Sequence record: KU726251.1
DNA: 64,000 bases
Strand: one strand, 5' to 3'
Numbering within the stretch: the first letter of the stretch is position 1; each line of letters begins with the position of its first letter. This document shows, in pieces, positions 9,408-52,957 of the stretch. The position numbers and the translations under genes were made by a program. The notes under the pieces are model-generated. The model had not been told where the DNA came from, made no database searches, and saw only the letters and a list, made by a program, of their open reading frames with translations.

Positions 9408-9412
9408 AAAAA

Positions 9413-9438
9413 TTTATAGATAGATATTATCTTAGGGA
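9413..9438 (+). promoter_or_regulatory. Early-type promoter E2
   Basis: AGATAGATATTAT-ctta-GGGA fits the 8-copy consensus. Confidence 0.65.
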
Positions 9439-9472
9439 GAGAGTCGTTCGGTTTTAACTTAAGGAGACAGTA

Positions 9473-10171: not shown

Positions 10172-10176
10172 AGTTT

Positions 10177-10200
10177 TTTACGTTACGGGCACTGGGTATG
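10177..10200 (+). promoter_or_regulatory. Bipartite motif TTTAC-N15-TATG
   Basis: TTTAC 10177-81, TATG 10197-200. Confidence 0.6.
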
Positions 10201-10219
10201 AACCCGTGCCCAAAGTAAT

Positions 10220-10243
10220 CTGAGATAGATATTATCTACGTGA
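10220..10243 (+). promoter_or_regulatory. Early-type promoter E3
   Basis: AGATAGATATTAT-ctac-GTGA. Confidence 0.65.
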
Positions 10244-10276
10244 ATAATTCTTTTGGTATTATTACTGGGATGCTCA

Positions 10277-11281: not shown

Positions 11282-11292
11282 GGGAGGCCGGT

Positions 11293-36832: not shown

Positions 36833-37100
36833 TCGTACAGTGTCGAAGTCTAAAGAAGTCGTTTACAACGTTGAAGACGGTGATGTAATGCAGTTTCGTG
36901 CCGTCATTGACGAACAGCACGTACTCCAAGTCGTTTATTCGAAAGAAGAAATGACTCGCGCACATAGCCGCGTGTTAGAAAAACTCGTTGCGAAAGCCAA
37001 ACAGCGCGACGGTATTAAATCCTACAACGTCATGTACGGTTATCAGCTACGTGAAGTGGAAGGGGAGTTGCTAATCACCCCTGTTCCGGTAACGGCGTAA
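36822..37100 (+). CDS. Hypothetical protein (92 aa)
   Basis: RBS GGAG before ATG 36822. Confidence 0.7.
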   Translation: MQINRTVSKSKEVVYNVEDGDVMQFRAVIDEQHVLQVVYSKEEMTRAHSRVLEKLVAKAKQRDGIKSYNVMYGYQLREVEGELLITPVPVTA

Positions 37101-37140
37101 TTCGCCATTGTATGACCCTTAAATACCGTTGAGGTTAACT

Positions 37141-37623
37141 ATGGATATGATCGAATTAGGTCAGCTCCCTCAGCACGATTTTGATTTAGGCGTGCGTCAT
37201 GAGGAAGGGGCCGACGCGAACACACTTATGGCCCGCTACTACGAGCTACTGACCGGTCAACCGTTGGACGATGAGTATATCAACCGTTTTGAAAAACTGT
37301 TGGCACAACTCATCACCTCTAACGCAGAACGCATTGGCATGTTAAACGAAATGAACTTTGCTGATGTGGAACCGTCTGACGCTCAGAAGATTCTTATCGA
37401 TGGTCCTGTGCCAAGCGATGAGGTACAAGACCTTCTGGCAGGTATCCGTGCAGGCTTCGATGAAGCTGCTGAGAAATACGCGGAAGAGCTGGCAGATGTC
37501 GATTTGGCTGCGCCGGTTGACCCGAATCCATCTGCAGAGGAGACTGCAGCTGCGAAATTGAAACTCGCACGCTTTATCTGTGCTGCTGTCTTGACAGACG
37601 ACCGTGAAGAAAACCAACTGTAA
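37141..37623 (+). CDS. Acidic hypothetical protein (160 aa)
   Basis: RBS GAGG; about 35 D/E vs 12 K/R by hand count. Confidence 0.75.
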   Translation: MDMIELGQLPQHDFDLGVRHEEGADANTLMARYYELLTGQPLDDEYINRFEKLLAQLITSNAERIGMLNEMNFADVEPSDAQKILIDGPVPSDEVQDLLAGIRAGFDEAAEKYAEELADVDLAAPVDPNPSAEETAAAKLKLARFICAAVLTDDREENQL

Positions 37624-37629
37624 GGCCCG

Positions 37630-37666
37630 CCTCCTTGCCCACGGGTGAGGAGGTCCCTTTTTATTT
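37630..37666 (+). terminator. Intrinsic terminator
   Basis: CCTCCTTGCCC/GGTGAGGAGG imperfect stem plus T-rich tail. Confidence 0.65.
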
Positions 37667-37687
37667 ACATCAGTCCACTAACTTATG
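37664..37687 (+). promoter_or_regulatory. Bipartite motif TTTAC-N15-TATG
   Basis: TTTAC 37664-68, TATG 37684-87. Confidence 0.6.
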
Positions 37688-37719
37688 TGAAACAACCCAC
37701 GTAATGAGGAATTAAGAGA

Positions 37720-38037
37720 ATGTGGTTAAGTGCTATTCATCGTGACCTGCCAAAACGTGAAGTGACTCTTTCTGTCGATGCGGAACCGATTACCGTTGGT
37801 GTCGCAAACTTCGACCGTATGGAAGAAGGACAGTATGTCGTGGTGGACAACGATGAAAACGAATTCATGTTATTCCATCCCGAAGTTGATGCGTCTGAAA
37901 TCCGCGAGGGTTCTATCTTGTTTTCTTGGCAAGACAAAGAAACTAAACAGTGGATGTGGTGCGTTGCTAACACAACCAATGAAAAAGGTACCGCGTATGC
38001 CCCAGGACAGCTTCATGTCGAACCTAAACCCCATTGA
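37720..38037 (+). CDS. Hypothetical protein (105 aa)
   Basis: RBS GAGGA. Confidence 0.7.
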   Translation: MWLSAIHRDLPKREVTLSVDAEPITVGVANFDRMEEGQYVVVDNDENEFMLFHPEVDASEIREGSILFSWQDKETKQWMWCVANTTNEKGTAYAPGQLHVEPKPH

Positions 38038-38329
38038 GCCCGCACTGACGCACCAGGAACTGCACGTCCGTTTTATTCGGGCGTTCACACCCCCGTTAGG
38101 TGGTGAGGTACACGATCGTTCCGTGGTTGCAGAAGTTAAAGGTATCGGCGAAGAACTAATGACACTGTCTAATATTGTGACGGGTGTTGAGTTCACGTTA
38201 CCGTTAAACGTATTTCGGTTTATTCCGCGCGTAAACGAAACGCTGCTCATCGACCGTGTACATCATCGGATTATGGCGCAGGTACATCCTAGCCGTAAAG
38301 AGTATGTGCGCTTAGAGATGATGGTCTAA
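38015..38329 (+). CDS. Hypothetical protein (104 aa)
   Basis: ATG 38015 in the frame of track ORF 37778. Confidence 0.6.
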   Translation: MSNLNPIEPALTHQELHVRFIRAFTPPLGGEVHDRSVVAEVKGIGEELMTLSNIVTGVEFTLPLNVFRFIPRVNETLLIDRVHHRIMAQVHPSRKEYVRLEMMV

Positions 38330-38338
38330 CGCACGACT

Positions 38339-38363
38339 TTTCAGATAGATGTTATTTTACTGA
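38339..38363 (+). promoter_or_regulatory. Early-type promoter E6
   Basis: TTTCAGATAGATGTTAT-ttta-CTGA. Confidence 0.65.
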
Positions 38364-38391
38364 ACCTAACTGTAAAGAAAGGAAAAAGTAG

Positions 38392-38697
38392 ATGGCTAAA
38401 CAATACACAATTGTTAAACGCGCAGGTACGACTCTGCTGTACGTGGAGAAAGGTTGTGAGAACACTGCAACCGCCAAGAAACTGAACCTGCAAGGGTTTC
38501 TGTATCAAGGTCTCCGCGCGGGTTTGACCATCACTTTCAAAGGCTTACCACAGGCGAAGAATCTGCGCGTCGTACGTGCAGACGGTGTAGAACGTGCCTT
38601 GGTAGCCGACACCCCGGTTGATACTATCCCTGCCAGTAAGAAGGCAGCGAAAGCAACCAAGAAAGTCGTCGATAAACGCAAACGCGCTGTCGCTTAA
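38392..38697 (+). CDS. Basic small protein with Lys/Ala-rich tail (101 aa)
   Basis: Single-gene unit from E6 to a terminator; ends KKAAKATKKVVDKRKRAVA. Confidence 0.8.
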   Translation: MAKQYTIVKRAGTTLLYVEKGCENTATAKKLNLQGFLYQGLRAGLTITFKGLPQAKNLRVVRADGVERALVADTPVDTIPASKKAAKATKKVVDKRKRAVA

Positions 38698-38703
38698 GTA
38701 GTC

Positions 38704-38743
38704 CCCTACCTAACTTCGGTTAGGTAGGGCTCTTTTTATTTTT
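38704..38743 (+). terminator. Intrinsic terminator
   Basis: CCCTACCTAAC-ttcg-GTTAGGTAGGG plus T tract. Confidence 0.85.
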
Positions 38744-38763
38744 AACCCTCTGGGGGATATACC

Positions 38764-39216
38764 ATGTTTCAATGTTCAGTCGTCAATGATGCGGAATTGG
38801 CCGTGTACAAGCAGCGCACAATCCGGGCGCTGGATGCTGAAAAACCAGTCGATGTTAAAACGCGTGCAATCATTAGGGCATTTAGCGAATGGCCGAATAT
38901 CGCAACCGTTTGGGCATTCACGGGAGAAGTTCGCAAAGACGGAGACAAGCTTCGTACACGTAGACACCACAGCTTAACATTTGTGGCAACCGAGGCGGGT
39001 CTTAAAGACATTAATCATTTATTAGAAGGATGGCAGCCGCACGAATACGGGAAACGTTTTCAGTTAAACTTTACTTGGCTGCGTCAAGAAGGCAACGCGA
39101 ATCTCTGTTATCCAAGCTGGACGTTTAGACTCAACTATCGACCTGACCCAGATGTGATGGAAAGAGTGATGGAGCACTGGCTCGCACTCGCAATTTTTAC
39201 AGAACATAACCATTAA
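38764..39216 (+). CDS. Hypothetical protein (150 aa), paralogue of the next gene
   Basis: WPNIATVWAFTG aligns with YPGATTMWSCHG. Confidence 0.7.
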   Translation: MFQCSVVNDAELAVYKQRTIRALDAEKPVDVKTRAIIRAFSEWPNIATVWAFTGEVRKDGDKLRTRRHHSLTFVATEAGLKDINHLLEGWQPHEYGKRFQLNFTWLRQEGNANLCYPSWTFRLNYRPDPDVMERVMEHWLALAIFTEHNH

Positions 39217-39244
39217 ATGAAGACACCCTTAAGGAGAATTAAAG

Positions 39245-39715
39245 ATGCCAGTTTTATACGGTGGCGTGGATCTGAAAGTTTTGGATCGGTTTAAACTACG
39301 GGCATCCGAAGCGCTCGTAAACGGTTGGGTCGAGCGTGGGGTACGGGATGCGTGTGAAGTTATTTGCCGTTACCCCGGCGCGACGACAATGTGGTCATGT
39401 CATGGACACGGACCATATTCTAAAAAGAACTCGCCAGGGGAGTTCCATGTAGTGTTTGTTCTTGGTGTTGGCTTTGAGCACAAAGCGCATGAGCTAGTTG
39501 CTGAGTTAATGAAAGCGGATATTCCACCATTGTGGGATTTATCCATGGCGAGACTCATGTACCCTGATGATGATTTCGTTTATGACCTCAGCGAAATCAC
39601 CCTGAAAAACACGTATAACGCGTGGAAGATAACGTATCGTTATCTGCACACCGAACAATCCCTTCGTGAAATTCGTAAAGTATTCCACACAGTTTGCAAA
39701 AAGGTTTTTAACTAA
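39245..39715 (+). CDS. Hypothetical protein (156 aa) with T-x-W-S-C-x-G-H motif
   Basis: RBS TAAGGAG; motif resembles TYW3-like phage proteins. Confidence 0.65.
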   Translation: MPVLYGGVDLKVLDRFKLRASEALVNGWVERGVRDACEVICRYPGATTMWSCHGHGPYSKKNSPGEFHVVFVLGVGFEHKAHELVAELMKADIPPLWDLSMARLMYPDDDFVYDLSEITLKNTYNAWKITYRYLHTEQSLREIRKVFHTVCKKVFN

Positions 39716-40413
39716 TGGCTAAGCAAAAGAAACCCCGTAACAAAAAGTATAACCCGAAAGTTGCCACAGAACGTACGGCACACACCGTCGCTGAAAACGC
39801 TCTGAATCGTATCACGTTTATCGGCAGTTCGATTCGTCGCCTCGGGCCGTACGCGGGCCGTGGTTTTCACTTTACGGCAAGTCCTCGTATTCGTGCCATC
39901 GCCACAGATATGTTAGTCGGTGGGCTGTTCGACCAACCGCGACCATGGCATCTTTGGGTGATGCACCTCACTGAACTCGACACCGGTGAAATTGTAACAG
40001 AAACCGCAGTTGCCACACTTGACGATTATACTTTGGCGGACTTCTGTGAACACGCTGAGGAGTTAGTTAAATCGTTACGTCCTGAACAGGAAGAGGGGAA
40101 GTATTTCGGTTATGCGTTTGTGGCTGCACCGAACGAGCGGTACGACTTCAAAGCGGAAGAAGACCAGCTCATTGAAAACTTCATGCATTCTGGACTACTT
40201 GATACGTCGTTACATCTGTCGGAAGAACAACAGTTCGTTAGTCGTGCAGATATGGCAAAGTTACTTGTTGGTTATACTCGGAAGTTTGACGTGACCGTTG
40301 AACATGTCAAAGAAGTACCAGAGATTGTGAGCAAGAAAGACGAGGTGGTGCTTCCGGTTGACGAGGTCGTCGGTAAAGTAGCGACTGCGATAGGGGCAAC
40401 AGGGGATTACTGA
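39715..40413 (+). CDS. Hypothetical protein (232 aa), basic N-terminus
   Basis: TAATG coupling; MAKQKKPRNKKYNPK. Confidence 0.75.
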   Translation: MAKQKKPRNKKYNPKVATERTAHTVAENALNRITFIGSSIRRLGPYAGRGFHFTASPRIRAIATDMLVGGLFDQPRPWHLWVMHLTELDTGEIVTETAVATLDDYTLADFCEHAEELVKSLRPEQEEGKYFGYAFVAAPNERYDFKAEEDQLIENFMHSGLLDTSLHLSEEQQFVSRADMAKLLVGYTRKFDVTVEHVKEVPEIVSKKDEVVLPVDEVVGKVATAIGATGDY

Positions 40414-40622
40414 TGAATCTACGTTGGCCGATCGCAGCTGCTGTGTTGTTCTGTATTTATATCGCCGTCAGTACCAGTACCCGCACTGCAGAACGTCGAG
40501 AGACCGCAACCAGCACGTTCAGAATGTGTATTGATCGAGTAGACCCGAACAATAGCACTTATCCTGACGCTGTGAACGCGTGTCGCAAAGCGGTTGCTGA
40601 GATATTGAAAGAGGAAAAATAA
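40413..40622 (+). CDS. Small membrane-anchored protein (69 aa)
   Basis: N-terminal hydrophobic helix, C-terminal Cys pair. Confidence 0.7.
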   Translation: MNLRWPIAAAVLFCIYIAVSTSTRTAERRETATSTFRMCIDRVDPNNSTYPDAVNACRKAVAEILKEEK

Positions 40623-40712
40623 TGGAAAACCTCACGCCGATTGAGATAGTGGCGCTATTAACCCTAGGTTACATGGATTTGATTTTAACCCCATTAATTA
40701 TCGAGTGAATAA

Positions 40713-41198
40713 ATGAAACTACAAACCGAGGTTAAGGAAATACCCGCACAAACCGTGGCATCCGCGAGTGGACTGATACTGTCTATACCGTGCGACGAAT
40801 TTAAAGACTCGGCCCGTCCCGACGAAACGATATCGTTAGCATTACGTCGCGGACACGTTTTCTGTGAATTCGACGCGCCTGTGATTAAACCGTGTCAGTC
40901 GTTCGGGGAAGTAAAGGCCGCCATTGATCGGATACGTTGTATTGAACTCGTACGCGTTTGCGGTTATGTATCGAACGTCTGCTATGGCGTTGTCGATGGT
41001 TACTTTCAACTCCGCGGTGAATTCACACCACACGGCCCACTCAAAGCGTTAGCGATTGAAGTGATGCGTGCAGGCACCATCACGATTTCTCCACGTATAG
41101 AACTCGATGGATATGGGAAGATTGTTTGCATCCCATCTTTCGATGTTGTGGCAGAAGAAACCCCACGTTATCAATTTCTACATACGGTGAAACAATGA
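40713..41198 (+). CDS. Degenerate prohead-protease-like (T4 gp21/S80-type) protein (161 aa)
   Basis: GHVFCEFDAP...RIRCIELVRVCG...GEFTPHGP...ISPR parallels GELxHP...IxxxRVSH...GxxxPxGP...SSR. Confidence 0.45.
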   Translation: MKLQTEVKEIPAQTVASASGLILSIPCDEFKDSARPDETISLALRRGHVFCEFDAPVIKPCQSFGEVKAAIDRIRCIELVRVCGYVSNVCYGVVDGYFQLRGEFTPHGPLKALAIEVMRAGTITISPRIELDGYGKIVCIPSFDVVAEETPRYQFLHTVKQ

Positions 41199-42203
41199 CA
41201 AAGCTTGTTTCGTTTTCAGCAGGGTTGGATTCCACCTGGATAATGTATCAGCTGTTGTGCAAAGCACCGGCCAATGAAGCGCGACATGATCGCCTGACGA
41301 GATTGTGACATGTGGAATGGAGGTAACGCGAACTTCATGGAAATTCTTTGTAGTGTGGCCATTGTTGAACGGTTAATGGACAGATACCACGCACAAACCG
41401 ATCGTGTTACATGGGCGGTGCTCGGGGAAGAGAACTTTCCGCCTGTCGTTAGCGCCGGCTACGCTAACGGCTGGTCGCCTCTGGTTCAGCAAGGCAATGT
41501 TGTTAACGGTCTCGCTAAACTGATGTGCGACATTACACGCAAACAGCACCACGCCTATGCAGTTGTTGGCTGGAATAAGCTAGATGCGTTGGAGAATAGT
41601 CTAGAGCTGGGAGATTGGACATTAGACGAGTACGCTCGCTTAAAGAACCTTTATAGCGAACTAATGTATTTCCAAGATCATGCCGGCCGCGTTCCACCGC
41701 TTCTAACACCTGCGTGGGATAAAGAGAAACTGGAAATGTGGCAGGAGTTGCCGGAAGACATTCGTAGATTGGTGCAGGTCAGTAACTACAACAACTACGA
41801 ATTCGCGATAGACCGTGAGAATAACATGCTCATCGTTTATGCCCATCCGTCGGCAAAGTCGCAGAATTATCGTAGTCTTGGTATTACACCGTCTGTGGGA
41901 TGGGAGATTAAAATCAACGATGCTTACAGACGGGTATGGTGCTCTGCTCTTGGTGGTGCTATTTCTGCTATGGGTTTGGACGTACCGACTTTTGCTAACT
42001 TTAAGGACCCGAAAAGAAATCACACAACCTTTACGGTAACTGAAGATACTGAAAGACTATTTATCACGTCATTTACAGCAGAAGAGTGGTGCGAATATGC
42101 ACCGCATTTTAAAGCGCTTCAGGAGAAAGAAAAAGAGAGAGCGAAAAATGCCAAAGCAAGTAAAGCTGTGGACGCTCCAACTGGCGAAGTGGCGGATAGC
42201 TGA
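41195..42203 (+). CDS. PP-loop (QueC-like) adenylating enzyme, frame broken at about 41290-41310
   Basis: N-terminal LVSFSAGLDST (SGGxDS-type PP loop); downstream ORF has VGWNKLD and LLTPAWDKEKLEM, like QueC-family TPL..K.E. Confidence 0.6.
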
Positions 42204-42531
42204 AAAACGGAATTTGCCAAAGCTGGATATAACAGTTAAGTCGGGGCTGAAATATTTGGCACCCGACTGGGACTTTCTGATGGACTACAAGAAGTCTGAC
42301 AAAGGCCCCGACGCAGAAGCTGCGTATACCAAACGCTACCTGCAGAAACTTAGTCGGTTGTTTGATGAAGACACTGATAAGTTGATAGAGATTCTCCGCC
42401 AGGGCGAGGTCGTACTAATGTGCTATTGCCCACCGGGGAAATTCTGTCATCGCCACTTGCTAGTTTCTTACCTTATTGAAATCGGTGAGTGGTTCGGTTA
42501 TGAAGTAATTTACATGGGCGAGTTATCGTAA
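42148..42531 (+). CDS. DUF488/YeaO-like protein (127 aa)
   Basis: LAPDW...YTKRY...VVLMCYCPPGKFCHRHLL. Confidence 0.7.
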   Translation: MPKQVKLWTLQLAKWRIAEKRNLPKLDITVKSGLKYLAPDWDFLMDYKKSDKGPDAEAAYTKRYLQKLSRLFDEDTDKLIEILRQGEVVLMCYCPPGKFCHRHLLVSYLIEIGEWFGYEVIYMGELS

Positions 42532-42542
42532 GGAGAGTCATC

Positions 42543-42938
42543 GTGAAATTGATTATGCCTAAAACCGTTCCCAATCAGGATATGGTTACGACTACACTGT
42601 TTTCTGAATCATTACGTAACTCTGTACGTCAGACCGCTTCACGTCTAGACGTGGCAGTTGAAGAACTCGACCCAGAAGTCTTCATGAAGTATGCGTTTAT
42701 TGCAGAAGGTTACGCGATCGCCCTGAGTTATGCGCGGTATGTCGATGACGTGACAGAAGCTAAACGTTATTTAGAAGGCTGTTGTCAAGTTTTCCGTGAA
42801 GAAATCACCGAGATGGAGATGGTTGACCGTGGCTTACCTGAATTTGTAAAGGTGGGTTACGATAAGCTGTTGCAATCCATCGCGGATGAGATCAAACGTC
42901 GCGGGTTAACTGTGGTGCACAGCGCTACACTACACTAA
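42543..42938 (+). CDS. Hypothetical helical protein (131 aa)
   Basis: RBS TAAGGAG. Confidence 0.7.
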   Translation: MKLIMPKTVPNQDMVTTTLFSESLRNSVRQTASRLDVAVEELDPEVFMKYAFIAEGYAIALSYARYVDDVTEAKRYLEGCCQVFREEITEMEMVDRGLPEFVKVGYDKLLQSIADEIKRRGLTVVHSATLH

Positions 42939-42952
42939 CGGCGTACGAGTAG

Positions 42953-42991
42953 GCTACCACACGATCATATGTGTGGTAGCTTATTTTTTTT
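42953..42991 (+). terminator. Intrinsic terminator
   Basis: GCTACCACAC/GTGTGGTAGC plus T tract. Confidence 0.8.
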
Positions 42992-43007
42992 GTTTCTGGA
43001 GGCGTTA

Positions 43008-43541
43008 ATGGCAGACCGCTATCAGCCCGACCTAACACTCTCGTCGAAAGCGCTTGTCGTGGCGTTGATTAATCACGATAACGGCTTGTCATTATCGCCT
43101 GACGAGATTGTGATAAGCGGAGTAGGGCCAATCGACTTAGGTGTTGAAAGTGCCCGTACCTCGCAAGCGTACATTGCGAAAGCACGTAAACCTAACGGCA
43201 AGAAGGTTACCGTCTATTACGACCGTCTAGTCGCTAATAAGATTATCGACCCGCAAGGACCGATACTGGTTACTGTAGCTCCCGGCGACACCTATGCTGA
43301 TTTAGCGACAGTTGTAAACCAGTTATGCGGTTTAAACTTGTCACGTGAAGACATCTCGACAGGGGTTATTACACCAACAAACGAGCCGTTGATTGCAGCG
43401 ATGAGTGACGATTCACCGGCTTGGACGGCTACCTTTACATTCACGGCGTTTAATGAAAAAGAAGCTGTGGCAAGTCTGGATGAAGAAACTGTTTTATGCA
43501 TCGGTGATGATGCAGTGTTAACCTACGGAGACGATGCATAA
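43008..43541 (+). CDS. Tail/baseplate paralogue family A adaptor (177 aa)
   Basis: SSKALVVALINHDN...VTVYYDRL...CGLNLSREDI. Confidence 0.7.
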   Translation: MADRYQPDLTLSSKALVVALINHDNGLSLSPDEIVISGVGPIDLGVESARTSQAYIAKARKPNGKKVTVYYDRLVANKIIDPQGPILVTVAPGDTYADLATVVNQLCGLNLSREDISTGVITPTNEPLIAAMSDDSPAWTATFTFTAFNEKEAVASLDEETVLCIGDDAVLTYGDDA

Positions 43542-44011
43542 TGGCAACTGTAGTCAAAAAGAAACGTTTGCATGAACTCGATTCTTACGACGGTGATAAG
43601 TCGAGCGCAGTAGCGCTTATTAGCGTTGATGAAAAGGAGTACAAACTTCCTCTCAGTGAAATCGGCGGCGGGGCAGATGCAAACCCTATCCAAAACTTAT
43701 CCGGTGCTGACGGTATCGTTGAAATAGATCCCAATATTGCGGACGACTTCATTATCCGTTTAGGTGACCCCACCACTGCGCTTTCTATCACACCTATTAC
43801 CGACCCGGTTCCGGGTACGCGATATGAATTATTACTGACGCTACGTCAGGGTACCGGTGCAAACAAAATCACCTGGCCGGCTTCGGTTAAATGGCCTAAC
43901 GGTGCAGAACCTCCGTTATCGTACACGCTAGACGCCGAGGATGTGTTGTCGTTGTCATCTACGGATGGCGGTACAACCTGGAAAGGGGCCATTTGCGGAA
44001 CAGGATACTAA
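43541..44011 (+). CDS. Small tail-fibre-associated protein (156 aa)
   Basis: LTLRQGTGANKITWPASVKWPNG...STDGGTTW, a common phage tail C-terminal domain. Confidence 0.7.
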   Translation: MATVVKKKRLHELDSYDGDKSSAVALISVDEKEYKLPLSEIGGGADANPIQNLSGADGIVEIDPNIADDFIIRLGDPTTALSITPITDPVPGTRYELLLTLRQGTGANKITWPASVKWPNGAEPPLSYTLDAEDVLSLSSTDGGTTWKGAICGTGY

Positions 44012-44014
44012 GCC

Positions 44015-47000
44015 ATGCGCAAATTTAAAATCTCTGCTAAACGACATGCGTTGAACTATGCGATGTCGCTGGCTTACGGACATCAGGACTTTGTTCGCCG
44101 CAATACCGGTCTCACAAACGACGCCACAAAGACCATTATCTGATTAACCCAGAAGGGGTGCTATCTAATAACCGGCATTTCATTGCTGACTCCATGGCTG
44201 TGTATCAACCTAACGGTGACGCCACCACAGAAGGCCAATCGTTGCTGATTATTGGCTACTGTCACATGTACATTGCTACCAAAAACCAGATGTGGTTAGA
44301 TGCGGCGATTCGTGCATGGGAAGCGTACGCTACCTACTATTACGCAGGTCAGGCCATTCCTGAGTCACCGCAACGTTGGATTTGTAACTGGCTAGTTAAC
44401 GGTAAAGAACCGGTGCTGTCAGACTATCCGGTGCATCCGACCGAGCCAACCCACGGTGGTTACAAGTGTGTACCGGTAACGTTTACGAACGGGCGTTGTC
44501 AGATACCCCAAGGCGCACCGTTCTTTGGTGAATATCTGAACAATTTCTTTTCTGCGCATCGTGGCCATCCTACCTGGGGCGCGGTTAATGCTGACGTACA
44601 GAAAATTAAGGAATCGGAAGACGGGTTAATTGACTGGTCTAAAGTCCCTGATTACTTAATCACCAATCCAGAGAAACCTTACGATGTAAAAGCGTGGGTG
44701 GACTGGAACAGGATGTTAAACGACCCAACCGGATATACCCCAATATGGGGTGGTTCTACCTCGAAAGGTCCGCGGTACGAACCTGACTGGTTTGTTGTGT
44801 GGACGGGTGAGAAGGTTCAAGACGGCGAAGTCATCGAATCCGGTTTACCTGATGCCCAGAAAGGAACCGTACAATTAAAGGACACCAGTATTAACGGTGT
44901 ATATTTGATTAACTACGCATCCCAGGTACCTGTAGAGCACGGCGGATATTTGTTTGACCGCAATGAGCCGTGGCACAACCGTCCGGTTCATACCCCGTTA
45001 AAAGGGTCTGTTAACCAGATGGGTAACGCGGCAGATGCGGAAGTGTGGTTTATTGATGCCTGTTATCTGCTCTGGCGTATCACAGGTGAACCGCGCTATA
45101 AAGCCGCACTAGACTCTGTGTTCTATACAGCGCATGAATACACGTATATCGATGCGAAGGACAAGTTTTTCCGACGTTCTAAGCTAGCCGAAACACCATT
45201 TACAGATGGTATCTCGTACGACTATAAATACCCCAGCACTGTTGAGGTCGCTTACAGTCGTGATGAAAATGGTGATATTGTGTTCCGTTCTGAGAAAGCT
45301 GTGCAGAACTTTATGGAACAGCAAGCCGTGCGTTTCAGGATAAACAGTCAATCGAAGTTACGTGTGACGTATGGCGGTGTTTGCGACAACGGTGATGCGC
45401 TTGCGTGTAAAGTGATGGTGGATATCAACCCCGTTAAAGCGGATACTGAAGAAGTAAACTGGTACGGCTGTACGCTTCCAGGATCAACATCGATGGAAGT
45501 AAAACAGCATGACATCGGTTTAGGGCATCTGGCCAGAATGACTAATCCGGCCAACGGTGAAGATTACATCATTGCCGATGCGCGAGCATGTTCAGATTAC
45601 GGTGGGTGTACGTGGCAGGAGAAGTTTGAGAGCAACATCTACGATGGTCGTTCAGGCACAATCGTAGAAGCGTTATTCCCGAACGACGATGCGGGCTTCA
45701 TTATCGGTTTCTGGTTAACCGATGCTGGAGTTGCGCCCCCACAGTCAATTGTCTATCGTGCTGATGCCGATTTCAACTTCCGTTTCGAAGATACCAACAA
45801 GTGGCGTTGGTGGTGGATGTTGCCCGCGACTAACGGGGAATGGAAACAGGTTATTATTCGCCCTGAAGACGCAACACTCTCGGGCTATCAACCTGACCAC
45901 GATACCGATGCCGAAACAAAACCGTCTGCGCCAAACTACACAACTATCGATCAGGTAACCATACTGCCCGATTCGGCTGTGGAGAATGCGCACTTTAGCT
46001 GGTATTGCGTAAACGATGTTCCGCCACTGTTTAATGCAGATGATGGCTGGACATTAACGTTTCGCATCGCAATTCGGGGAGGTTCTGCATTTACGGGTAA
46101 AGTGGGCGATTGTACGATAAAAGATTACCGTCTTGACTCGCTCGCGTATTGTCCAGGAACGATACCGTTCTCGAACATTTATTCGGAAGGAACGTATCAG
46201 CTAGGTGCATGGCACGGGATGCCGTATCCTGGCTATCAGTATCCGTTTATGTACACCATACACACCGATGATCGCTACAAAGTCTGGCTCTTAAATCAGA
46301 TTCGGTTTATGCACGATTCACAAACCAACTACCAGGCGCAGTTAGGTGAGTTGGGTCCAGGTTGTGCGGCGTATATTTGGAACCGTTGGGATAACTACAC
46401 TTACGGACCGGCAGATACGTGGACAACGTTCCATTGGGGAGATGGACATCCGTGGGCAGGTTATCAGCCACGCGCGTATAACGCCGCTGCGCGTTGTTGG
46501 TACGAATTAGTTGTGCGTGGTAAAGAGGTTCCACCAGAGCTAGTAGAGTACGTTGAAAATTGGGCTAAGTGGCTCGTAGGGTTCTTAGACCGCTTTGACA
46601 ACCACACTCCGAATGAATTCCCTACGGCACCAAATAAACCGGTATGGGTAGAGAATGATTTCACAGCACATATGTGTGCGCTCTGGATAGCAGGCAGCGC
46701 TTATGCGGCAATGGCTGGCTGTACAGTGGAAGGGTTGAGCCGTATTATGGATATGGGGATGAAGGAGATGGGTGACAACTTCACCGTCACCGACATTCCA
46801 GGAAAAGCCATTAACGGTGCCTGGTCTCCGTGGGCAAACCCTACTACGGATAACGGTCAGGCTTTTGGGTTTTATACTGGAGAAGCGATGCGTGCAATCG
46901 GGTTGTATCTCCTCTATAAAGAACACGGCCCAGGACATGATATTTATCGTGACTTGGCAATCCCCGACCACACAACAGCTTCACTCGATATAACGTTTAC

Positions 47001-47031
47001 TATCCCAGACGATCCGCTCGAAACTAATTAA
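44015..47031 (+). CDS. GH8-like glycoside hydrolase / tail-associated enzyme (about 1005 aa), one apparent missing A at about 44129
   Basis: TTEGQSLL and NAADAEVWFIDACYLLWRITGEPRY match BcsZ-type SEGQ and SASDGDVW...WKEQRY motifs; jelly-roll-like insert; the N-terminal 38 codons rejoin after adding one A. Confidence 0.6.
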
Positions 47032-47036
47032 GTGTA

Positions 47037-47079
47037 TACCAGCTATCCTTCGGGGTGGCTGGTACGCTTTATTTTATTT
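47037..47079 (+). terminator. Intrinsic terminator
   Basis: TACCAGCTATCC-ttcg-GGGTGGCTGGTA plus T-rich tail. Confidence 0.8.
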
Positions 47080-47101
47080 CAGATAGATGTTATCTCAGTG
47101 A
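47077..47101 (+). promoter_or_regulatory. Early-type promoter E7
   Basis: TTTCAGATAGATGTTAT-ctca-GTGA. Confidence 0.7.
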
Positions 47102-47158
47102 ACCTCTGAAATTTACGTTTCAATCAGAGCTTATGTCATGTATTAAGGAGCAATTAAA

Positions 47159-47491
47159 ATGTCCAAAGTCTATCACATTGCGGTATTGCGTCAGGCAACT
47201 GACCTTGAAGGCGACGGTGAACTTCGAATGCAGGAAGCCATTCTGAGCACCGTTAAAGAACTTAACCAAGCAAACAATTTCGATGCACGCTTCGAGGCGC
47301 TGCCTGTAAGCCGTAACGCTTTCTACGGCAGTCAAATCCTGGCAACCCAGTTTGCGATGGCTTTAAGTGACTTGCGCAATAATCCTAGTCCTGAAACCGC
47401 GACGAAGATGAACAAACTGTCGTTATGGATGAATAACCTGGATGCCCCCGCAACATCCATTGTAAATGGTTTGGGGGTGGTTAATGGGTAG
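47159..47491 (+). CDS. Hypothetical early protein (110 aa)
   Basis: RBS TAAGGAG. Confidence 0.75.
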   Translation: MSKVYHIAVLRQATDLEGDGELRMQEAILSTVKELNQANNFDARFEALPVSRNAFYGSQILATQFAMALSDLRNNPSPETATKMNKLSLWMNNLDAPATSIVNGLGVVNG

Positions 47492-47819
47492 AGTAATCCG
47501 TGTTGCCAGACCAATGCGTCTCAATAGGACGCCGATGATAAATCGCGATATCAGTGAAGCTGTAAAACTGTTGTCGAATATCGACGGTTACACCTTTAAA
47601 GTGATAACACTGTACGACTACCCAGAAGGCAAAGTTCCGCAAGAGGCGCTGGATAAATTCGTTAATGTATTAGACGATTGCCTTAAGAGCCCAACGGACG
47701 TAAATCTTATCAAACTAAACACCATGTCCCATGAGCTGTACCGCCTGCGTAAAATGGGCATTCACGCTCGCATCGGTAAAGGTGACCAAACGTTGGCCGA
47801 ATACTGGGCTAAACAATAA
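47484..47819 (+). CDS. Hypothetical protein (111 aa)
   Basis: Overlap-coupled to the previous gene. Confidence 0.7.
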   Translation: MGRVIRVARPMRLNRTPMINRDISEAVKLLSNIDGYTFKVITLYDYPEGKVPQEALDKFVNVLDDCLKSPTDVNLIKLNTMSHELYRLRKMGIHARIGKGDQTLAEYWAKQ

Positions 47820-47846
47820 GCTATTTTAAATCCTAAGGAGCATTAA

Positions 47847-48365
47847 GTGAATATTACCATGAACCTGTACACCAAACGGGAACGTAACGTTTTAGAATCT
47901 GGCGTTGCCCCAGAAGTATTGGCTGCGGGGGATATTAGTATCGACCCACTGAAAGTGAAAGTCGCGGAACTGTTCCCTCGTGATGAATGGGACATCTGGT
48001 ATTTCCGTTGTTCGTCGGTATTGAATGCAATCAAACAACTGTCTGATTATCAGCCTGGCCCGTACATCGGTACCTGGCACTGGTACGTCCCTCGCACCCC
48101 GAACTTCCTCTACTTACACGATGACGATAAACGTACTCATATTCGCACTGTAGCGACGCCTGAGCGTTTGGAGCGTTATCTGGGGTTAATCCACGACCGT
48201 CCTCGTAACGAGCTGCAAAGCATCGTAGAAGTGCTCAGACAGGTACCTTTAGATGGTATCCTGGAACTGGACATGAAAATTGCTGATCGGCCTCGCCACT
48301 ACTGGGAATTTTCCTGGGTAGATGCGAAATACGAAAACCATAACGTTATCTATCTGAAGCGTTAA
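47847..48365 (+). CDS. Trp-rich hypothetical protein (172 aa)
   Basis: RBS TAAGGAG. Confidence 0.75.
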   Translation: MNITMNLYTKRERNVLESGVAPEVLAAGDISIDPLKVKVAELFPRDEWDIWYFRCSSVLNAIKQLSDYQPGPYIGTWHWYVPRTPNFLYLHDDDKRTHIRTVATPERLERYLGLIHDRPRNELQSIVEVLRQVPLDGILELDMKIADRPRHYWEFSWVDAKYENHNVIYLKR

Positions 48366-48375
48366 GGGGGACAGG

Positions 48376-48696
48376 ATGTTGAACTGGTTACTTGCGCTGA
48401 TTAACAAGCGACAAAAACAACTGTACGAAGAAAACCGAGAATTGGCTGCCGCTAACCGTCGTGTACAGGCCGATAACTTGCAGTTAAGACACGACCTCGC
48501 GAAACTGGGTGTTAACGCGAGTAGGCTTTGTACGCACATTAGCCGGTGCCACGATATCATCGAACGTATTGGACACTACCATCTTACGTCTCCTGCGCGT
48601 CGCGTCTATGACGCGGCCGTCCAGGGATTGAAAGATACCAGGAATGTGTACGACGAGATGTTAGAAGAGTTTAGCAAACGTGAGGATAAATACTAA
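48376..48696 (+). CDS. Coiled-coil hypothetical protein (106 aa)
   Basis: RBS AAGGGG. Confidence 0.7.
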   Translation: MLNWLLALINKRQKQLYEENRELAAANRRVQADNLQLRHDLAKLGVNASRLCTHISRCHDIIERIGHYHLTSPARRVYDAAVQGLKDTRNVYDEMLEEFSKREDKY

Positions 48697-49078
48697 TGGA
48701 AATGCCAACGAACACCGACTTAGCACTGGCAATCGAACACATGAAAAACCATCAGCTGACGTTACTGAATGCAAGCACAGAAGGGCAACGTCAAGGGTAT
48801 GCGCTCGTTGCAAAAGCAGCGTTAGAACTTAACAAGATTCTACTCGCTAAACTTTACGGGCTGGAAAACAGCGTGCTCCATGCGTCGCACCTGGCGAAGC
48901 CAGCGAGTTAGTTACGAATGTGCGGCTGTATGCAAGTCGTGAAATGGAACGTTTAACCAACGAATGGAATGTCCAGTGTAACGGCGAGCGTGCTGATAAA
49001 GATCCGCGTAAAGTCGCACTGACGCCGGGCGTGTACATCAAAGACGGCACCATTGACGAATACAGCGGATTTAACTGA
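48696..49078 (+). CDS. Hypothetical protein, either 71 aa or about 127 aa if a -1 shift near 48860-48905 is repaired
   Basis: The -1 frame is open 48851-49078 with protein-like sequence and no RBS of its own. Confidence 0.5.
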
Positions 49079-49101
49079 TCGGCGGATAAGGGTGATTGTG
49101 A

Positions 49102-49527
49102 ATGGTAACCATAGACGTAGCTATCTCTATCGAGCTTCAACGCATCGGTGTAGGTACACTAAAACTTCGTTATCGTGATTTACCGCATTACAACAAGATG
49201 TTTGATGTTGGGGTGATAAAGTTTTATAACCGGTACGGGCCAAGAGAACTATGTCTATGGTTTGTCGAGTTAGCGATAACTTATGGCGAGTTTTATCATC
49301 CTAATGTACCGCATGTCGAACATGTGTCAAGAGGGCACCTGGAAACTTCCAGAGAGTTCTATCAGCGATTGTATGGCGCGATGGAGGAGTCCGCACCCAT
49401 CGACTACGACGTACCACCTGAACTGTTATTAATCGACCATGAAGGAGAAGCCGGTGTCTATTTCATTACAGGGACTGACTATTCACGAGATTCAGAAATA
49501 TTTACTCGAGGGCGGGAAACTGACTGA
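49102..49527 (+). CDS. Hypothetical protein (141 aa)
   Basis: In-operon ORF. Confidence 0.6.
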   Translation: MVTIDVAISIELQRIGVGTLKLRYRDLPHYNKMFDVGVIKFYNRYGPRELCLWFVELAITYGEFYHPNVPHVEHVSRGHLETSREFYQRLYGAMEESAPIDYDVPPELLLIDHEGEAGVYFITGTDYSRDSEIFTRGRETD

Positions 49528-49759
49528 CGACTATCAAACCGCAGATATGTTGCTACAGTCATTTGTACCGTTACGTGCTGAGTATTACGAAATCGCGTTC
49601 CTGGGCGATGAATATTGTGTCCGCACGCAAGGGCGCGAATACGAAGCAGTTCGCGTACCGCGCACACTCGGCGGGGTGATGATACTTATCGCTAATATCG
49701 AAGCACTCAATGCGAAATGTGCGTTATACATCGCACAGGGAGGTCGCAATGGATTTTAA
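49439..49759 (+). CDS. Hypothetical protein (106 aa)
   Basis: Protein-like; overlaps the previous ORF by 89 bp, so the start is uncertain. Confidence 0.6.
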   Translation: MKEKPVSISLQGLTIHEIQKYLLEGGKLTDDYQTADMLLQSFVPLRAEYYEIAFLGDEYCVRTQGREYEAVRVPRTLGGVMILIANIEALNAKCALYIAQGGRNGF

Positions 49760-49824
49760 GTGGGAACCATTATCGTTAGCAGAAGTTCGTAACAGAATCG
49801 ATAGAGCTATTGCAAGGAGAAAAC

Positions 49825-50226
49825 ATGTTCGGCCTGTTTCAGGAGAAAAAACAATTGCGTCGCCAATTAGAAATACTGGAATTGGAACTCAGCCTCTCAA
49901 AGACTGAGTTGGAAATTTCGAAAGAAGCGTGGAAGAGAAATCTCGATGAATCTTTCGAAGAACGCCGTAAGCTTACACGATTACTTTCTGAGGAACAGTC
50001 TAAGAACCGGAAACTCGAAGACGAGCTACGAGATGCCCGACGAGATGCGGATCTGCGTGATAAGATGTTGGGATGGAACCTGGGTGCCCTAATCTATTTC
50101 ATAGAGCAGCGTTGGGAACCAAAGACACTCCTTGAGTTACTCTATGAAAAACTCTCCTGCGTAGGTAAACGTTCTGCGGCCATCGAGTATTTTCGTAGTC
50201 ACGGTTTCGAGGTAAAAGATGAGTAA
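49825..50226 (+). CDS. Coiled-coil hypothetical protein (133 aa)
   Basis: Strong RBS AAGGAG before ATG 49825. Confidence 0.7.
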   Translation: MFGLFQEKKQLRRQLEILELELSLSKTELEISKEAWKRNLDESFEERRKLTRLLSEEQSKNRKLEDELRDARRDADLRDKMLGWNLGALIYFIEQRWEPKTLLELLYEKLSCVGKRSAAIEYFRSHGFEVKDE

Positions 50227-50269
50227 AAATAACAGTTTGTTTTCCCTTTAACCATGGAAACCACAAGCA

Positions 50270-50602
50270 ATGAAAACGAAACGAACGTCAGTCGTGTTCC
50301 AGCAGGGACGTGCGCGACTCTATAAAGGTAAGAAACTCATTGGTACATTCGAGTATCAAGAGAACCAGCTAATCGTCGATGTTATCATTCTCGGTTTAGC
50401 AGCGAAGTGGTCACCTTTAAAAAGGACATTAGCCAAACGTGCGATGGAGAAGCTCCGCCGCGACCAGATAAAAGCATTTAACAAACCTTTTCCACTTGAG
50501 GCGTACCGAGTACAGCCTCGTTGCGCACACATCACGACGTCACCCATGATTGCTAAGCTCGATGTGACCGATCTGAGAGAAATGTTAACTGTACGGCCGT
50601 AG
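50270..50602 (+). CDS. Basic hypothetical protein (110 aa)
   Basis: In-operon ORF. Confidence 0.65.
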   Translation: MKTKRTSVVFQQGRARLYKGKKLIGTFEYQENQLIVDVIILGLAAKWSPLKRTLAKRAMEKLRRDQIKAFNKPFPLEAYRVQPRCAHITTSPMIAKLDVTDLREMLTVRP

Positions 50603-50629
50603 TGTCATAGCCCCTTAAGGAGTATTTAA

Positions 50630-51070
50630 ATGTTAAAGCCACGCAAACAGAAAAGATTACAGTTTGTCAAAATAGTACATCCGGAGTCCCGTCGTGTTAC
50701 AGGTGGACGTCTCTACGTGGGTAAACACCGTAGTCGTCTTATCAGCTGGTCGGCAATGGCCAACGTAGCCACCCAACTCCAGGCAATGGTTGAAGACCGT
50801 TGTCAGTTAAAAGGGGACTTCTTTCAAGAGAAGAAACCCTACCGTGATATCTTCCGTACACTGAAAGCGTGCTGGGTACTCAGTTGGGTGCCTGGCCGCG
50901 AACAACTTTATTTTCTGCGTAAGTTCCCACGCCCTATGCCGAAAGAAAACATTAGCGTTTTCTTAGACAAACTAAAACGTTTTAATGGCATCGGCATTAA
51001 CGCTAATAAAGAGCAAGTTTCTGCTACAGTAGCAGCCCGGAAACTCTTACGCGATTACGTGGCCGATTGA
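50630..51070 (+). CDS. Basic hypothetical protein (146 aa)
   Basis: RBS TAAGGAG. Confidence 0.7.
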   Translation: MLKPRKQKRLQFVKIVHPESRRVTGGRLYVGKHRSRLISWSAMANVATQLQAMVEDRCQLKGDFFQEKKPYRDIFRTLKACWVLSWVPGREQLYFLRKFPRPMPKENISVFLDKLKRFNGIGINANKEQVSATVAARKLLRDYVAD

Positions 51071-51110
51071 CTTGAGAGGCACTTATCCCAAAAGCGGTCA
51101 ATAAAGCAGC

Positions 51111-51148
51111 ACCCTACTCCTTCGGGAGTAGGGTTTCTTCTTTTTTTG
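51111..51148 (+). terminator. Intrinsic terminator
   Basis: ACCCTACTCC-ttcg-GGAGTAGGGT plus T tract. Confidence 0.85.
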
Positions 51149-51168
51149 TCTAGTCCGATTACAATTAT

Positions 51169-51242
51169 TTTCAGATATATATTACTTAGGTGAGAGTTAA
51201 CCATTAACTCTTATCTAATCGACCATTATCTTAAGGAGTTTT
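51169..51242 (+). promoter_or_regulatory. Early promoter E8 with leader hairpin and conserved leader
   Basis: TTTCAGATATATATTAC; stem AGAGTTAA/TTAACTCT; AATCGACCATTATCTTAAGGAGT. Confidence 0.8.
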
Positions 51243-51245
51243 AAC

Positions 51246-51692
51246 ATGTACATTCTGAATAACGAACTTACTAAGTACGCTAGCAAAAACCCGATTATGA
51301 TTTCTTTCCTAATCGTGATGGCGGCCAACAAACAAGACCCTAGCGAATTCACTACTGAGGACTTCGAAGAGATTATCGCCAACGCCAAAGAAGCCACGTT
51401 CCAGACCACAGAACCTACTCGCGACGAGTTCCCTCTAGGTGAAGCCGGCGATGTAATGTTTAACGACATGATTGCTTCGTACTACATCAATAAACGTGGT
51501 ATGGAAATCGAATACGACGAACTTCCTACTAGCAGCTTTGCTGAAATGATTCGTGATTATCGTCGTCAAGTTGTCTCTGACGATGTCGTAAAGAAATACA
51601 TGGCACAAATCAGCCCATTCAGTCTTGAATTCGAAAACCGCGCGGTTGCCTTAGCAACACATCGCCTGCGTTTAGAAAAAGAAGTACACTAA
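51246..51692 (+). CDS. Acidic early hypothetical protein (148 aa)
   Basis: First gene after E8; host-like codons. Confidence 0.8.
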   Translation: MYILNNELTKYASKNPIMISFLIVMAANKQDPSEFTTEDFEEIIANAKEATFQTTEPTRDEFPLGEAGDVMFNDMIASYYINKRGMEIEYDELPTSSFAEMIRDYRRQVVSDDVVKKYMAQISPFSLEFENRAVALATHRLRLEKEVH

Positions 51693-51753
51693 TAATAACC
51701 CGGCGGGCAAAGTCCCGCCAATTCACCTACAATCTACAAAAAAGGAATATCCC

Positions 51754-51972
51754 ATGCGCAACCTGTTCTCCAAATCTGAAATCAAACCTGTTGTTGAAAC
51801 CGCAGCCAAACGTAAGCCAGACATGATTGACCTGCTGCTGAAAATGTCTGCAGCAGAAGCCAAAGCTTTCATGAAGACAATGAAAGACGGCGAGAAAACG
51901 ATTGATAATGTTGAAGTAACCTACGGTGTTAAAGACCGCCCAAAGAATAACGACCTTGTGTGGGTCTGTTAA
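51754..51972 (+). CDS. Hypothetical protein (72 aa)
   Basis: RBS AAGGA; host-like codons; preceded by hairpin GGCGGG/CCCGCC. Confidence 0.75.
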   Translation: MRNLFSKSEIKPVVETAAKRKPDMIDLLLKMSAAEAKAFMKTMKDGEKTIDNVEVTYGVKDRPKNNDLVWVC

Positions 51973-52000
51973 TCGGCGATTGAGGATAAAGTCGTGAAGA

Positions 52001-52030
52001 AAAGGGAGCTTCGGCTCCCCTTCTTTTTTT
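52001..52030 (+). terminator. Intrinsic terminator
   Basis: GGGAGC-ttcg-GCTCCC plus T tract. Confidence 0.85.
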
Positions 52031-52149
52031 GTTTCCTTTTCTTTTTGTTTGCTCTTGTTCGGATTCTGGTACGCTCTACGCTTTTAATATGCTGGCAGGA
52101 GGTCTAAAAATCTTACGACCTCAATAATCCCTTAACTCGAGTTAACGCG

Positions 52150-52947
52150 ATGTCTTTTACTTCAAAACAGAATCTGCTAAAACTCATCAACGAAGAGAAT
52201 AAGATAAGCCCACCGCTTACCTTTGACGATGTTGATATCGGACTGCCGGAGGTTGTGTCAGTAGACGGTCGTGATTCGGAGGTGGTACTAACCTCGAAAA
52301 TGCGCGGTGATGAAGGTACGCAAGTGATTGTGGACTATCATCGTCGTCCATTAGAGGACTACCTTACAGGCGATGTTGCCTTTGGCGATGAAGATGTGCA
52401 TACCACGCACGACTTACTCGCGGCGATTAACGAGCGTTTTAATCTGTCTATCTTACCTGAGGATATCGAAGATAACCCCATTGATGGACAGACTCACACA
52501 GTCGTTGCTGTTGAAACTTCCCACGAGTGGCGAAGTCAAGCGGTCATCGAGCTGAAACCTGCTACACCTCTGGCAGAAGTAATAACCAATACAGAGTTGA
52601 GCGGTCTTCTGTACCCGGATCACCAGGACATCCAGTTGGGTCAGGCGTATATCTATTCGCGCGACATCGATTGTAGCCACATCTCTCGTTTCCTGAGCCT
52701 CTTAGCGGTCGGTATCGAGGTAGATGACACGGCGTTAGCAATCGAACTCAACAAATGTGTTCCTGAGATTTGGGTGGCTGAAGATACCCCATCCCCGTAT
52801 AACTTGCGTGGTGCTACTGTCGTATTCGACGGCGTACCTGCAGACTTACCGGGAGCAAATACGGCGTTCGCGAAAGTCGTGTCAGTGCAACTGACCGATA
52901 AATGTACGAACTTCCAGGGCAGCCTCAACTTACACTTTAACAACTAG
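52150..52947 (+). CDS. Tail/baseplate paralogue (A+C domains) 1, 265 aa
   Basis: SKQNLLKLINEEN...YHRRPL...RFNLSILPEDI...LSGLLYP...YSRDIDC...GSLNLHFN. Confidence 0.75.
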   Translation: MSFTSKQNLLKLINEENKISPPLTFDDVDIGLPEVVSVDGRDSEVVLTSKMRGDEGTQVIVDYHRRPLEDYLTGDVAFGDEDVHTTHDLLAAINERFNLSILPEDIEDNPIDGQTHTVVAVETSHEWRSQAVIELKPATPLAEVITNTELSGLLYPDHQDIQLGQAYIYSRDIDCSHISRFLSLLAVGIEVDDTALAIELNKCVPEIWVAEDTPSPYNLRGATVVFDGVPADLPGANTAFAKVVSVQLTDKCTNFQGSLNLHFNN

Positions 52948-52957
52948 GAGGGTATAG

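Follow-up and report, generated by a model that had tools for sequence, protein, structure and literature searches.

A module of three genes was analysed in a stretch of 64,000 nucleotides (the window) from the record of phage SEGD1 (KU726251), a jumbo phage of the genus Seoulvirus that is related to phiKZ. The products of this module probably form a glycan-acting side appendage at the periphery of the tail. The 4.2-kb region carrying the module was 100% identical to SEGD1 (KU726251) and 98.9% identical to Salmonella phage SPN3US, a second jumbo phage of this genus, whose gp122-gp123-gp124 (SPN3US_0122-0124) are orthologues of the three genes, present in the same order and between the same flanks. 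All three open reading frames (ORFs) lie on the + strand and are tightly coupled, the stop codon of gene 1 overlapping the start codon of gene 2 at position 43541. The elements of the module are as follows.

42947..42996, + strand: upstream intrinsic-terminator-like hairpin (42947-42986; 17-bp stem, 6-nt loop) followed by a T run, from the terminator scan
43008-43541, + strand: gene 1, 177 amino acids (aa), SEGD1 gp125 and SPN3US gp122, N-terminal half of DUF7941
43541-44011, + strand: gene 2, 156 aa, SEGD1 gp126 and SPN3US gp123, the adaptor
44015-47031, + strand: gene 3, SEGD1 gp127 and gp128, corresponding to SPN3US gp124 (1005 aa, intact), large tail protein, frameshifted here
47037..47074, + strand: downstream intrinsic-terminator-like hairpin (47037-47064; GC-rich 12-bp stem, 4-nt loop) with a T-rich tail

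The description of the locus as a terminator-bounded three-gene module, given in a sequence-only reading that preceded this analysis, was confirmed, as the three coupled ORFs stand between two strong + strand hairpins. The upstream hairpin terminates the preceding gene (stop at 42938), and the downstream one begins 6 nt past the stop codon of gene 3. The two bracketing hairpins had by far the longest stems among the terminator-like hairpins of the neighbourhood, while the scan as a whole revealed no enrichment over shuffled sequences (7 seen versus 7.6 expected). The mechanical ORF start of gene 1 at 42969 falls in the loop of the terminator and was discarded in favour of the annotated ATG at 43008, which is preceded by GGAGG. 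The distance between the T run of the upstream terminator and the start codon of gene 1 is approximately 20 nt (42986-43008), which leaves no space for a separate promoter; transcription of the module must then rely on read-through or start at a promoter located before the upstream hairpin or overlapping it.

The predicted display of the proteins on the virion was supported by the published mass spectrometry of SPN3US (PMC10052503, Table S2). The orthologue of the large protein, gp124 (113.7 kDa), was represented by 530 peptide-spectrum matches (PSMs) in whole virions versus 20 in tailless particles, and gp123 (16.5 kDa) by 55 versus 0; both were classed as tail proteins. The values for gp122 (18.8 kDa) were 22 versus 0, with the class given as non-virion. 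Judged by PSMs per unit mass, gp123 and gp124 were roughly equimolar. The corresponding proteins of phage rV5, gp42 and gp43, were both detected in virions.

The large protein had been described as being about 1000 aa long. This holds for SPN3US, Proteus phage 7 and SPFM4, in which gene 3 is a single frame of 3018 nt (1005 codons), whereas in the window the gene spans 3017 nt and is split by one frameshift. Comparison with these three relatives identified exactly one single-base deletion and no further indel; the deletion separates a short 5' piece from a long 3' piece in a different frame, and GenBank carries two 'tail-associated protein' coding sequences (CDSs) for gene 3, in SEGD1 only among the records listed. 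In our analysis the two pieces were searched separately, and an intact natural relative (P0001, 99% identical) was used as the full-length protein. According to the structural models described below, the break separates a confidently predicted N-terminal helix from the body of the protein, and the body would be without this helix if the frameshift were real.

A genuine frameshift would mean that the SEGD1 copy is dead or N-terminally truncated and that the module is decaying in SEGD1. The deposited sequence and its two annotated CDSs point in this direction, as do the possible starts of the long 3' piece, none of which has a convincing ribosome-binding site as read from the sequence, and the short 5' piece, which encodes the whole of helix 2-29 of the intact relative (predicted local distance difference test, pLDDT, >90). 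On the other side, gene 3 is intact in all three relatives examined (97-99% identity), its body has gathered no additional stops or indels in SEGD1, the absent base falls in a run of three identical bases, and SEGD1 has only been deposited and never characterised (PMC6614189). Moreover, when the same 16 kb of SEGD1 and SPN3US were compared (SEGD1 98900-115100, about 36900-53100 of the window), five small frame-changing indels were found in 5 of the 28 SPN3US CDSs against only about 1% substitutions, a pattern that looks like errors in one of the two depositions and not like a biological difference. We therefore regard real decay as doubtful and an error of the deposited record as more likely, by a factor of roughly two.

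The adaptor gene and the proposed DUF7941 link

The conserved adaptor across phages is the product of the middle gene, which the sequence-only reading had presented as a small tail-domain protein, and not that of gene 1. The N-terminal part of gene 2 (approximately 58 aa) is lineage-specific, and the C-terminal domain of approximately 95 aa (residues ~59-150) is conserved; the protein matched phrog_9017, annotated as 'tail fiber protein' (E=1.4e-61). Among 80 IMG/VR loci encoding the large protein, 67 had an ORF directly upstream of the large gene whose C-terminal ~95 aa matched gene 2, preceded by an N-terminal part that varied from 12 to 460 aa. In 10 further loci Tail_P2_I, the domain of P2 baseplate protein I, was fused to the large protein instead of a gene-2-type ORF, and the remaining three loci were cut by contig ends. 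The N-termini of the gene 2 homologues included phage_tail_N, Phage_tail_fib and Phage_T7_tail, all of them known fibre-docking domains. Gene 2 also matched the partner encoded by an unrelated Salmonella myovirus (BLASTP, E=1e-16), and its domain was similar to that of the V18/rV5 partner (hhalign, 98.2%). The pair of adaptor and large gene occupied various positions: downstream of Baseplate_J and gpI in a P2-like prophage of Pseudomonas, at the end of a tail module of siphovirus type in a marine genome, and, in a Salmonella myovirus, flanked by the genes for the tail terminator and the sheath. Relatives of gene 2 carried the precomputed assignment PF26209. Searches of genes 1 and 2 against the PDB gave no significant match. 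Gene 1 was also considered as the general adaptor and rejected, being located beside the large gene in only four jumbo relatives versus 67 of the 80 loci for gene 2.

Further evidence on the relations between the three proteins came from an alternative allele of the module found in the Seoulvirus phages Lh1B, EC001 and JN03. In these phages gene 1 and gene 2 shared 49% and 41% amino acid identity, respectively, with those of the window, and of the large protein only the initial ~15-20 residues were swapped too, the rest being 96-100% identical. The swapped segment corresponds to approximately 43050-44100 of the window (608-1700 in Lh1B) and is flanked by DNA of 93-99% identity. From the joint replacement of the three pieces we infer that their products contact each other, with the large protein contributing its extreme N-terminus as the interface. 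E. coli was the isolation host of two of these three phages.

Gene 1 was assigned to DUF7941 (PF25613) by Pfam with 65.4 bits versus a cut-off of 27, and the match covered positions 3-162 of the 276 positions of the profile; it also matched phrog_2935 (E=2.5e-44). Further members of this family are encoded in the window, with Pfam scores of 103-286 bits overall:

52150-52947, 53811-54656 and 54678-55589: full-length DUF7941 paralogues (Pfam, 230-286 bits)
61645-63141: longer DUF7941 paralogue (Pfam)

One of the window paralogues matched the PDB chain 9xqd PHIKZ127 (E=1.9e-5); this protein, phiKZ gp127, also belongs to DUF7941 and has been modelled in the outer peripheral baseplate, where each star lobe carries it at the tip. 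A 2026 preprint on phage Goslar (bioRxiv 10.64898/2026.04.21.720040) presents DUF7941 as a module restricted to chimalliviruses, with head-to-tail assembly into filaments, and proposes its anchoring at the peripheral baseplate as a 'fiber cloud'. According to the same preprint, Goslar gp86, gp92 and gp161 add carbohydrate-binding, glycoside-hydrolase or leucine-rich repeat (LRR) domains, and gp92 carries an N-terminal DUF7941 module. Goslar gp92 proved to be the homologue of the large protein, and its neighbours on either side, gp91 and gp93, are DUF7941 genes. When its N-terminus was compared with a DUF7941-N profile headed by gene 1, hhalign aligned 128 columns with E=1.8e-4 and a probability of 48.5%. 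A gene-2-type domain hidden in Goslar gp92 was sought as well and rejected.

The sequence-only reading had placed the docking of the large protein on the paralogue family to which gene 1 belongs. Such docking is plausible because the Goslar large protein has DUF7941 fused at its N-terminus, but the general adaptor is gene 2. The name of main tail array, given earlier to the paralogues of the window, did not stand: their SPN3US counterparts (gp138-154, 'B' family) stayed with the heads in tailless-particle proteomics, tailless heads being as rich in them as whole virions (PMC10052503). This head location conflicts with the baseplate-anchored filaments of the Goslar preprint.

Spread, conservation and predicted fold of the large protein

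The large protein matched the PHROG family phrog_2871, annotated as 'tail protein', over residues 1-945 (E=0, 1445 bits). At least 301 relatives were found with 90% clustering and 367 representatives with 50% clustering, and tblastn detected the gene in 542 of 50,697 deposited phage genomes. Relative to the window protein, identity amounted to 98-100% in Seoulvirus, 56% in the Erwinia 84-kb phages, 46% in BP63-type Salmonella phages, 41% in phi92-like phages and Phapecoctavirus, 37% (36.6%) in Goslar, 30% in Vibrio phages and 26.5% in rV5-type phages. The searches of the large protein against Pfam, NCBIfam and PDB sequences gave no match; the family profile against the PDB and the carbohydrate-binding-module (CBM)-like insert searched alone against PDB sequences were likewise empty. 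In 20 distant or fused relatives, Pfam identified accessory domains only, together with sub-threshold hints of GH76, GH47 and C5-epim_C, all of which are alpha/alpha-barrel families. Some of the relatives were fused to a GDSL esterase and other enzymatic tail domains. The segment of ~160 aa that contains the WWW string pointed out earlier also stands alone in other tail proteins (phrog_23426). Database records already name the large protein 'glycosyl hydrolase' or 'glycosidase superfamily'.

Conservation of the large protein was even across its domains, with a mean domain identity of 48-72% over 35 relatives. It peaked in the mid helices and in a 40-residue loop with 38% invariant positions, and only the last ~30 residues were variable. 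Typical receptor-specific depolymerases do not show such evenness, which would also be compatible with a structural hub.

Two groups of records were observed in the course of these searches. A homologue with 70% identity is encoded at 50970-53701 of NZ_CP173450.1, a 221,873-bp 'plasmid' of the human isolate E. coli strain 98232; this 222-kb replicon is probably a jumbo phage genome assembled along with its host. The large gene was also carried by 23 records named as Campylobacter phages. One of them, phage C2 (MG065655.1), showed 26.6% identity, equal to that of the listed E. coli rV5-type phages, and has a similar genome of ~140 kb, and the Campylobacter host labels of these records may merit checking.

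AlphaFold2 models were built on an alignment of 36-40 sequences and compared with the PDB by Foldseek (top 50 matches per model). The model of the long piece of the window protein reached a pLDDT of 85.2 and a predicted template modelling score (pTM) of 0.80, and that of the intact relative P0001 reached 88.9 and 0.84. The models consist of 10-11 long helices interrupted by two beta-rich blocks, located as follows in the numbering of the intact relative.

2-29, 72-89, 92-109, 340-357, 360-375, 756-777, 817-834, 841-860, 885-901, 908-921 and 953-971: predicted long helices
~127-321 and ~401-703: predicted beta-rich blocks, the second being the larger

For the helical part, Foldseek returned GH48 cellulases with a probability of 1.00, GH116 with 0.94-0.98, GH78 rhamnosidase with 0.97-0.98 and glucuronyl C5-epimerase with 0.97. 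Part of the beta region matched CBM11 with a probability of 1.00 and a TM-score of ~0.5, and CBM22 too. At the level of the fold, the models are thus in line with the glycosidase-like alpha/alpha-barrel core and with the jelly-roll/CBM-like insert that had been predicted for this protein; the string WWWMLPATNGEWKQVIIRP, quoted for that insert, is present in the window. An invariant Glu and an invariant Asp of the large protein are each placed by the models on the first turn of a helix. We read the predicted fold as that of a six-hairpin enzyme, possibly similar to clan GH-M.

Proposed function of the module and its place among known tail systems

With a probability of roughly 65%, the three proteins of the module form a side appendage at the periphery of the tail, in which the gene 3 product acts on a glycan, gene 2 provides the adaptor and gene 1 the DUF7941 link. 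The working part would be a globular protein of ~1000 aa built on an alpha/alpha (six-hairpin-like) barrel with two beta-rich inserts, one of them CBM11-like. It most likely binds, and probably cleaves, a surface glycan conserved among Gammaproteobacteria. The C-terminal domain of gene 2 would partner the large protein, whose extreme N-terminus is the probable contact site, and the lineage-specific N-terminus of gene 2 would plug into the tail of the given phage. Gene 1, as a truncated DUF7941 protein, would in Seoulvirus tie this pair to the DUF7941/peripheral-baseplate system of chimalliviruses and is proposed as the anchor piece.

Several observations weigh against the appendage as outlined above. 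SPN3US gp122 was classed as non-virion by the authors of that study, the presence of DUF7941 paralogues with tailless heads fits badly with a purely baseplate-anchored DUF7941 system, and Pfam finds no DUF7941 in Goslar gp92. The Foldseek E-values were weak (best 2e-5), with barrel TM-scores of at most 0.27 and no close solved homologue. The large protein lacks a hypervariable domain and is evenly and highly conserved (40-60%) between phages whose hosts belong to different genera, and gene 3 is frameshifted in the window.

An alternative on function, which we consider unlikely, sees in the large protein a scaffold or lectin without catalytic activity: a conserved hub at the tail periphery that would bind a glycan, or carry other variable fibres, but cut nothing. 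The uniform conservation of the protein and the lack of a hypervariable region agree with such a role, and in rV5- and phi92-like phages the large gene is among the conserved, not allelically variable, genes of the fibre locus (PMC8594841). In ESCO13 the next gene downstream of it takes the place of phi92 fibre I, and the electron cryomicroscopy (cryo-EM) paper on phi92 left the 'arm-like scaffold' of fibre I and all of fibre II unassigned. The cassette has this location in phi92-like phages (8399-11748 in ESCO13), and the phi92 paper, published in 2026, never mentions the large protein. The invariant acidic, aromatic, Arg and His residues, however, cluster at the helix starts and in the 40-residue loop (38% invariant), a pattern expected of an active site and not of a strut. 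In addition, the neighbours of the barrel fold in Foldseek are all enzymes, and the fusion of some relatives to the GDSL esterase and other enzymatic tail domains argues in the same direction.

The weakest of the explanations is the original proposal that the large protein is a GH8-family beta-glucanase, cellulase-like or chitosanase-like, acting on biofilm cellulose or another exopolysaccharide, and we consider it very improbable. Of the two GH8 hallmarks that had been reported, TEGQ, whose Glu we take to be the general acid of GH8, is present in the window, but the second is not. The Glu and Gln of TEGQ were invariant in 36-40 relatives, down to 33-45% identity, and the motifs of the phage family are TTEGQS, with the Glu and Gln invariant, and a near-invariant AADAE-W. 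GH8 was represented by a shallow profile of E. coli BcsZ and 16 relatives with at least 60% identity, among which T53-S-E55-G-Q-S58 and A114-S-D116-A-D118-x-W120 are invariant. TTEGQS is identical to T53-S58 of BcsZ (TSEGQS) at five of six positions, and the second Asp of the GH8 motif is a Glu in the phage family. The best local profile matches were colinear, family E73 falling on BcsZ E55 and D341/E343/W345 on D116/D118/W120, so that both motifs were the top local matches to the BcsZ motifs and stood in the same order. These matches (BcsZ 52-60 and 113-122) comprised only 9-10 columns, with E=0.006-0.3 and probabilities of 0.2-6%. The best match of the barrel by fold is GH48, and GH48 and GH8 both belong to clan GH-M in CAZy.

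The remaining results on this question were negative. PF01270 (GH8) was not matched by the window protein at E<=1 or by 36 relatives at E<=10, the search of PDB sequences with the family profile was empty as stated above, and hhalign gave 0.6% probability between the family profile and the BcsZ-based one. GH8 structures were absent from the Foldseek top 50 of either model, and in a segment-wise profile comparison none of the C-terminal helices of the large protein could be mapped colinearly onto GH8. Membership in GH8 is therefore unsupported, the similarity being confined to the two short motifs. The proposed substrates, cellulose or amylovoran, were conjectural and are likewise unsupported: phages of many Gammaproteobacteria carry the family, no link to cellulose producers having emerged, and this spread, together with the unusually even conservation across hosts, points to a conserved glycan or a structural role and not to a strain-specific capsule or amylovoran. 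Biochemical data on any family member were not found in the literature searched. Tentatively, and with less confidence than is given to the appendage itself, the large protein may found a new glycoside-hydrolase family, distantly similar to GH8 and GH48, displayed on the tails of hundreds of gammaproteobacterial phages through a universal adaptor of ~95 aa and directed to a glycan conserved among their hosts. It could also account for the unassigned density of phi92-like phages, either fibre II or the fibre I arm.

Comparison with known systems helps to delimit this appendage. The nearest is SPN3US itself, the large gene of which is a single frame of 1005 codons, unlike the frameshifted copy of the window. 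The literature searched on SPN3US gp124, Seoulvirus glycosyl hydrolases and six-hairpin phage tail proteins contained no functional study beyond the designation 'tail protein'. Goslar gp91-gp92-gp93, considered here with phiKZ gp126/gp127 and the 'fiber cloud' model, has the large protein (36.6% identity) and flanking DUF7941 genes in common with the window, but in Goslar DUF7941 is fused to the large protein without a gene-2-type domain, whereas Seoulvirus has a separate DUF7941 gene of 177 aa with gene 2 placed between it and the large gene. The same two-gene cassette is formed by gp43 and gp42 in rV5 and by ESCO13_00178 and ESCO13_00179 in phi92-like phages/Phapecoctavirus, with large proteins of 26-41% identity. 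The N-terminus of rV5 gp43 (222 aa) resembles the particle-binding domain of the P22 tailspike, and the V18 homologue of gp43 carries the gene 2 domain noted above and is followed by the large protein. In the rV5- and phi92-like phages there is no DUF7941 gene and the cassette lies inside the main tail-fibre locus, whereas in the window it is isolated among small non-structural genes. Another ORF of the window (40713-41198, 161 aa) has an SPN3US counterpart labelled 'head maturation protease' in RefSeq, unlike the SPN3US literature, in which the prohead protease is gp245.

Among enzymes, the six-hairpin hydrolases GH48 (Cel48F, CelS), GH8 (BcsZ) and GH116 are comparable to the large protein in the alpha/alpha-barrel fold class predicted for the latter, and its Glu and Asp motifs resemble the invariant GH8 motifs in the same order, without sequence or profile homology. 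The large protein differs from all of them in that its barrel helices are interrupted by ~200 and ~380 residues of beta structure and in that it is attached to a virion. In phages K1-5/SP6, G7C and CBA120, a small protein docks by a phage-specific N-terminus and bears an exchangeable, carbohydrate-active spike, and these spikes are trimeric beta-helices that vary with the host serotype. The adaptor logic of the window module is alike, but its enzyme-like protein is predicted to be an alpha/alpha-barrel and is conserved across host genera. The arrangement in K1E/K1-5 is mentioned in PMC13450770.

The tail location of the SPN3US orthologues, the 'glycosyl hydrolase' labels of database records and the link between DUF7941 and carbohydrates in the Goslar preprint were already known. 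The generality of the gene 2 cassette, the pair of GH8-like motifs on a GH48-like predicted fold and the possible relevance to the phi92 fibres were not found in the literature searched and appear to be new. For SEGD1 itself the message is modest: its module is the orthologue of SPN3US gp122-124, with the '1000-aa protein' frameshifted in the record. More broadly, the cassette is present in therapy-relevant phages of the rV5, phi92, BP63 and SPN3US types, and its small middle-gene adaptor together with an enzyme-like protein predicted to be an alpha/alpha-barrel, and not a beta-helix spike, is a candidate for unassigned tail-fibre density and for the recognition of a conserved host glycan receptor.

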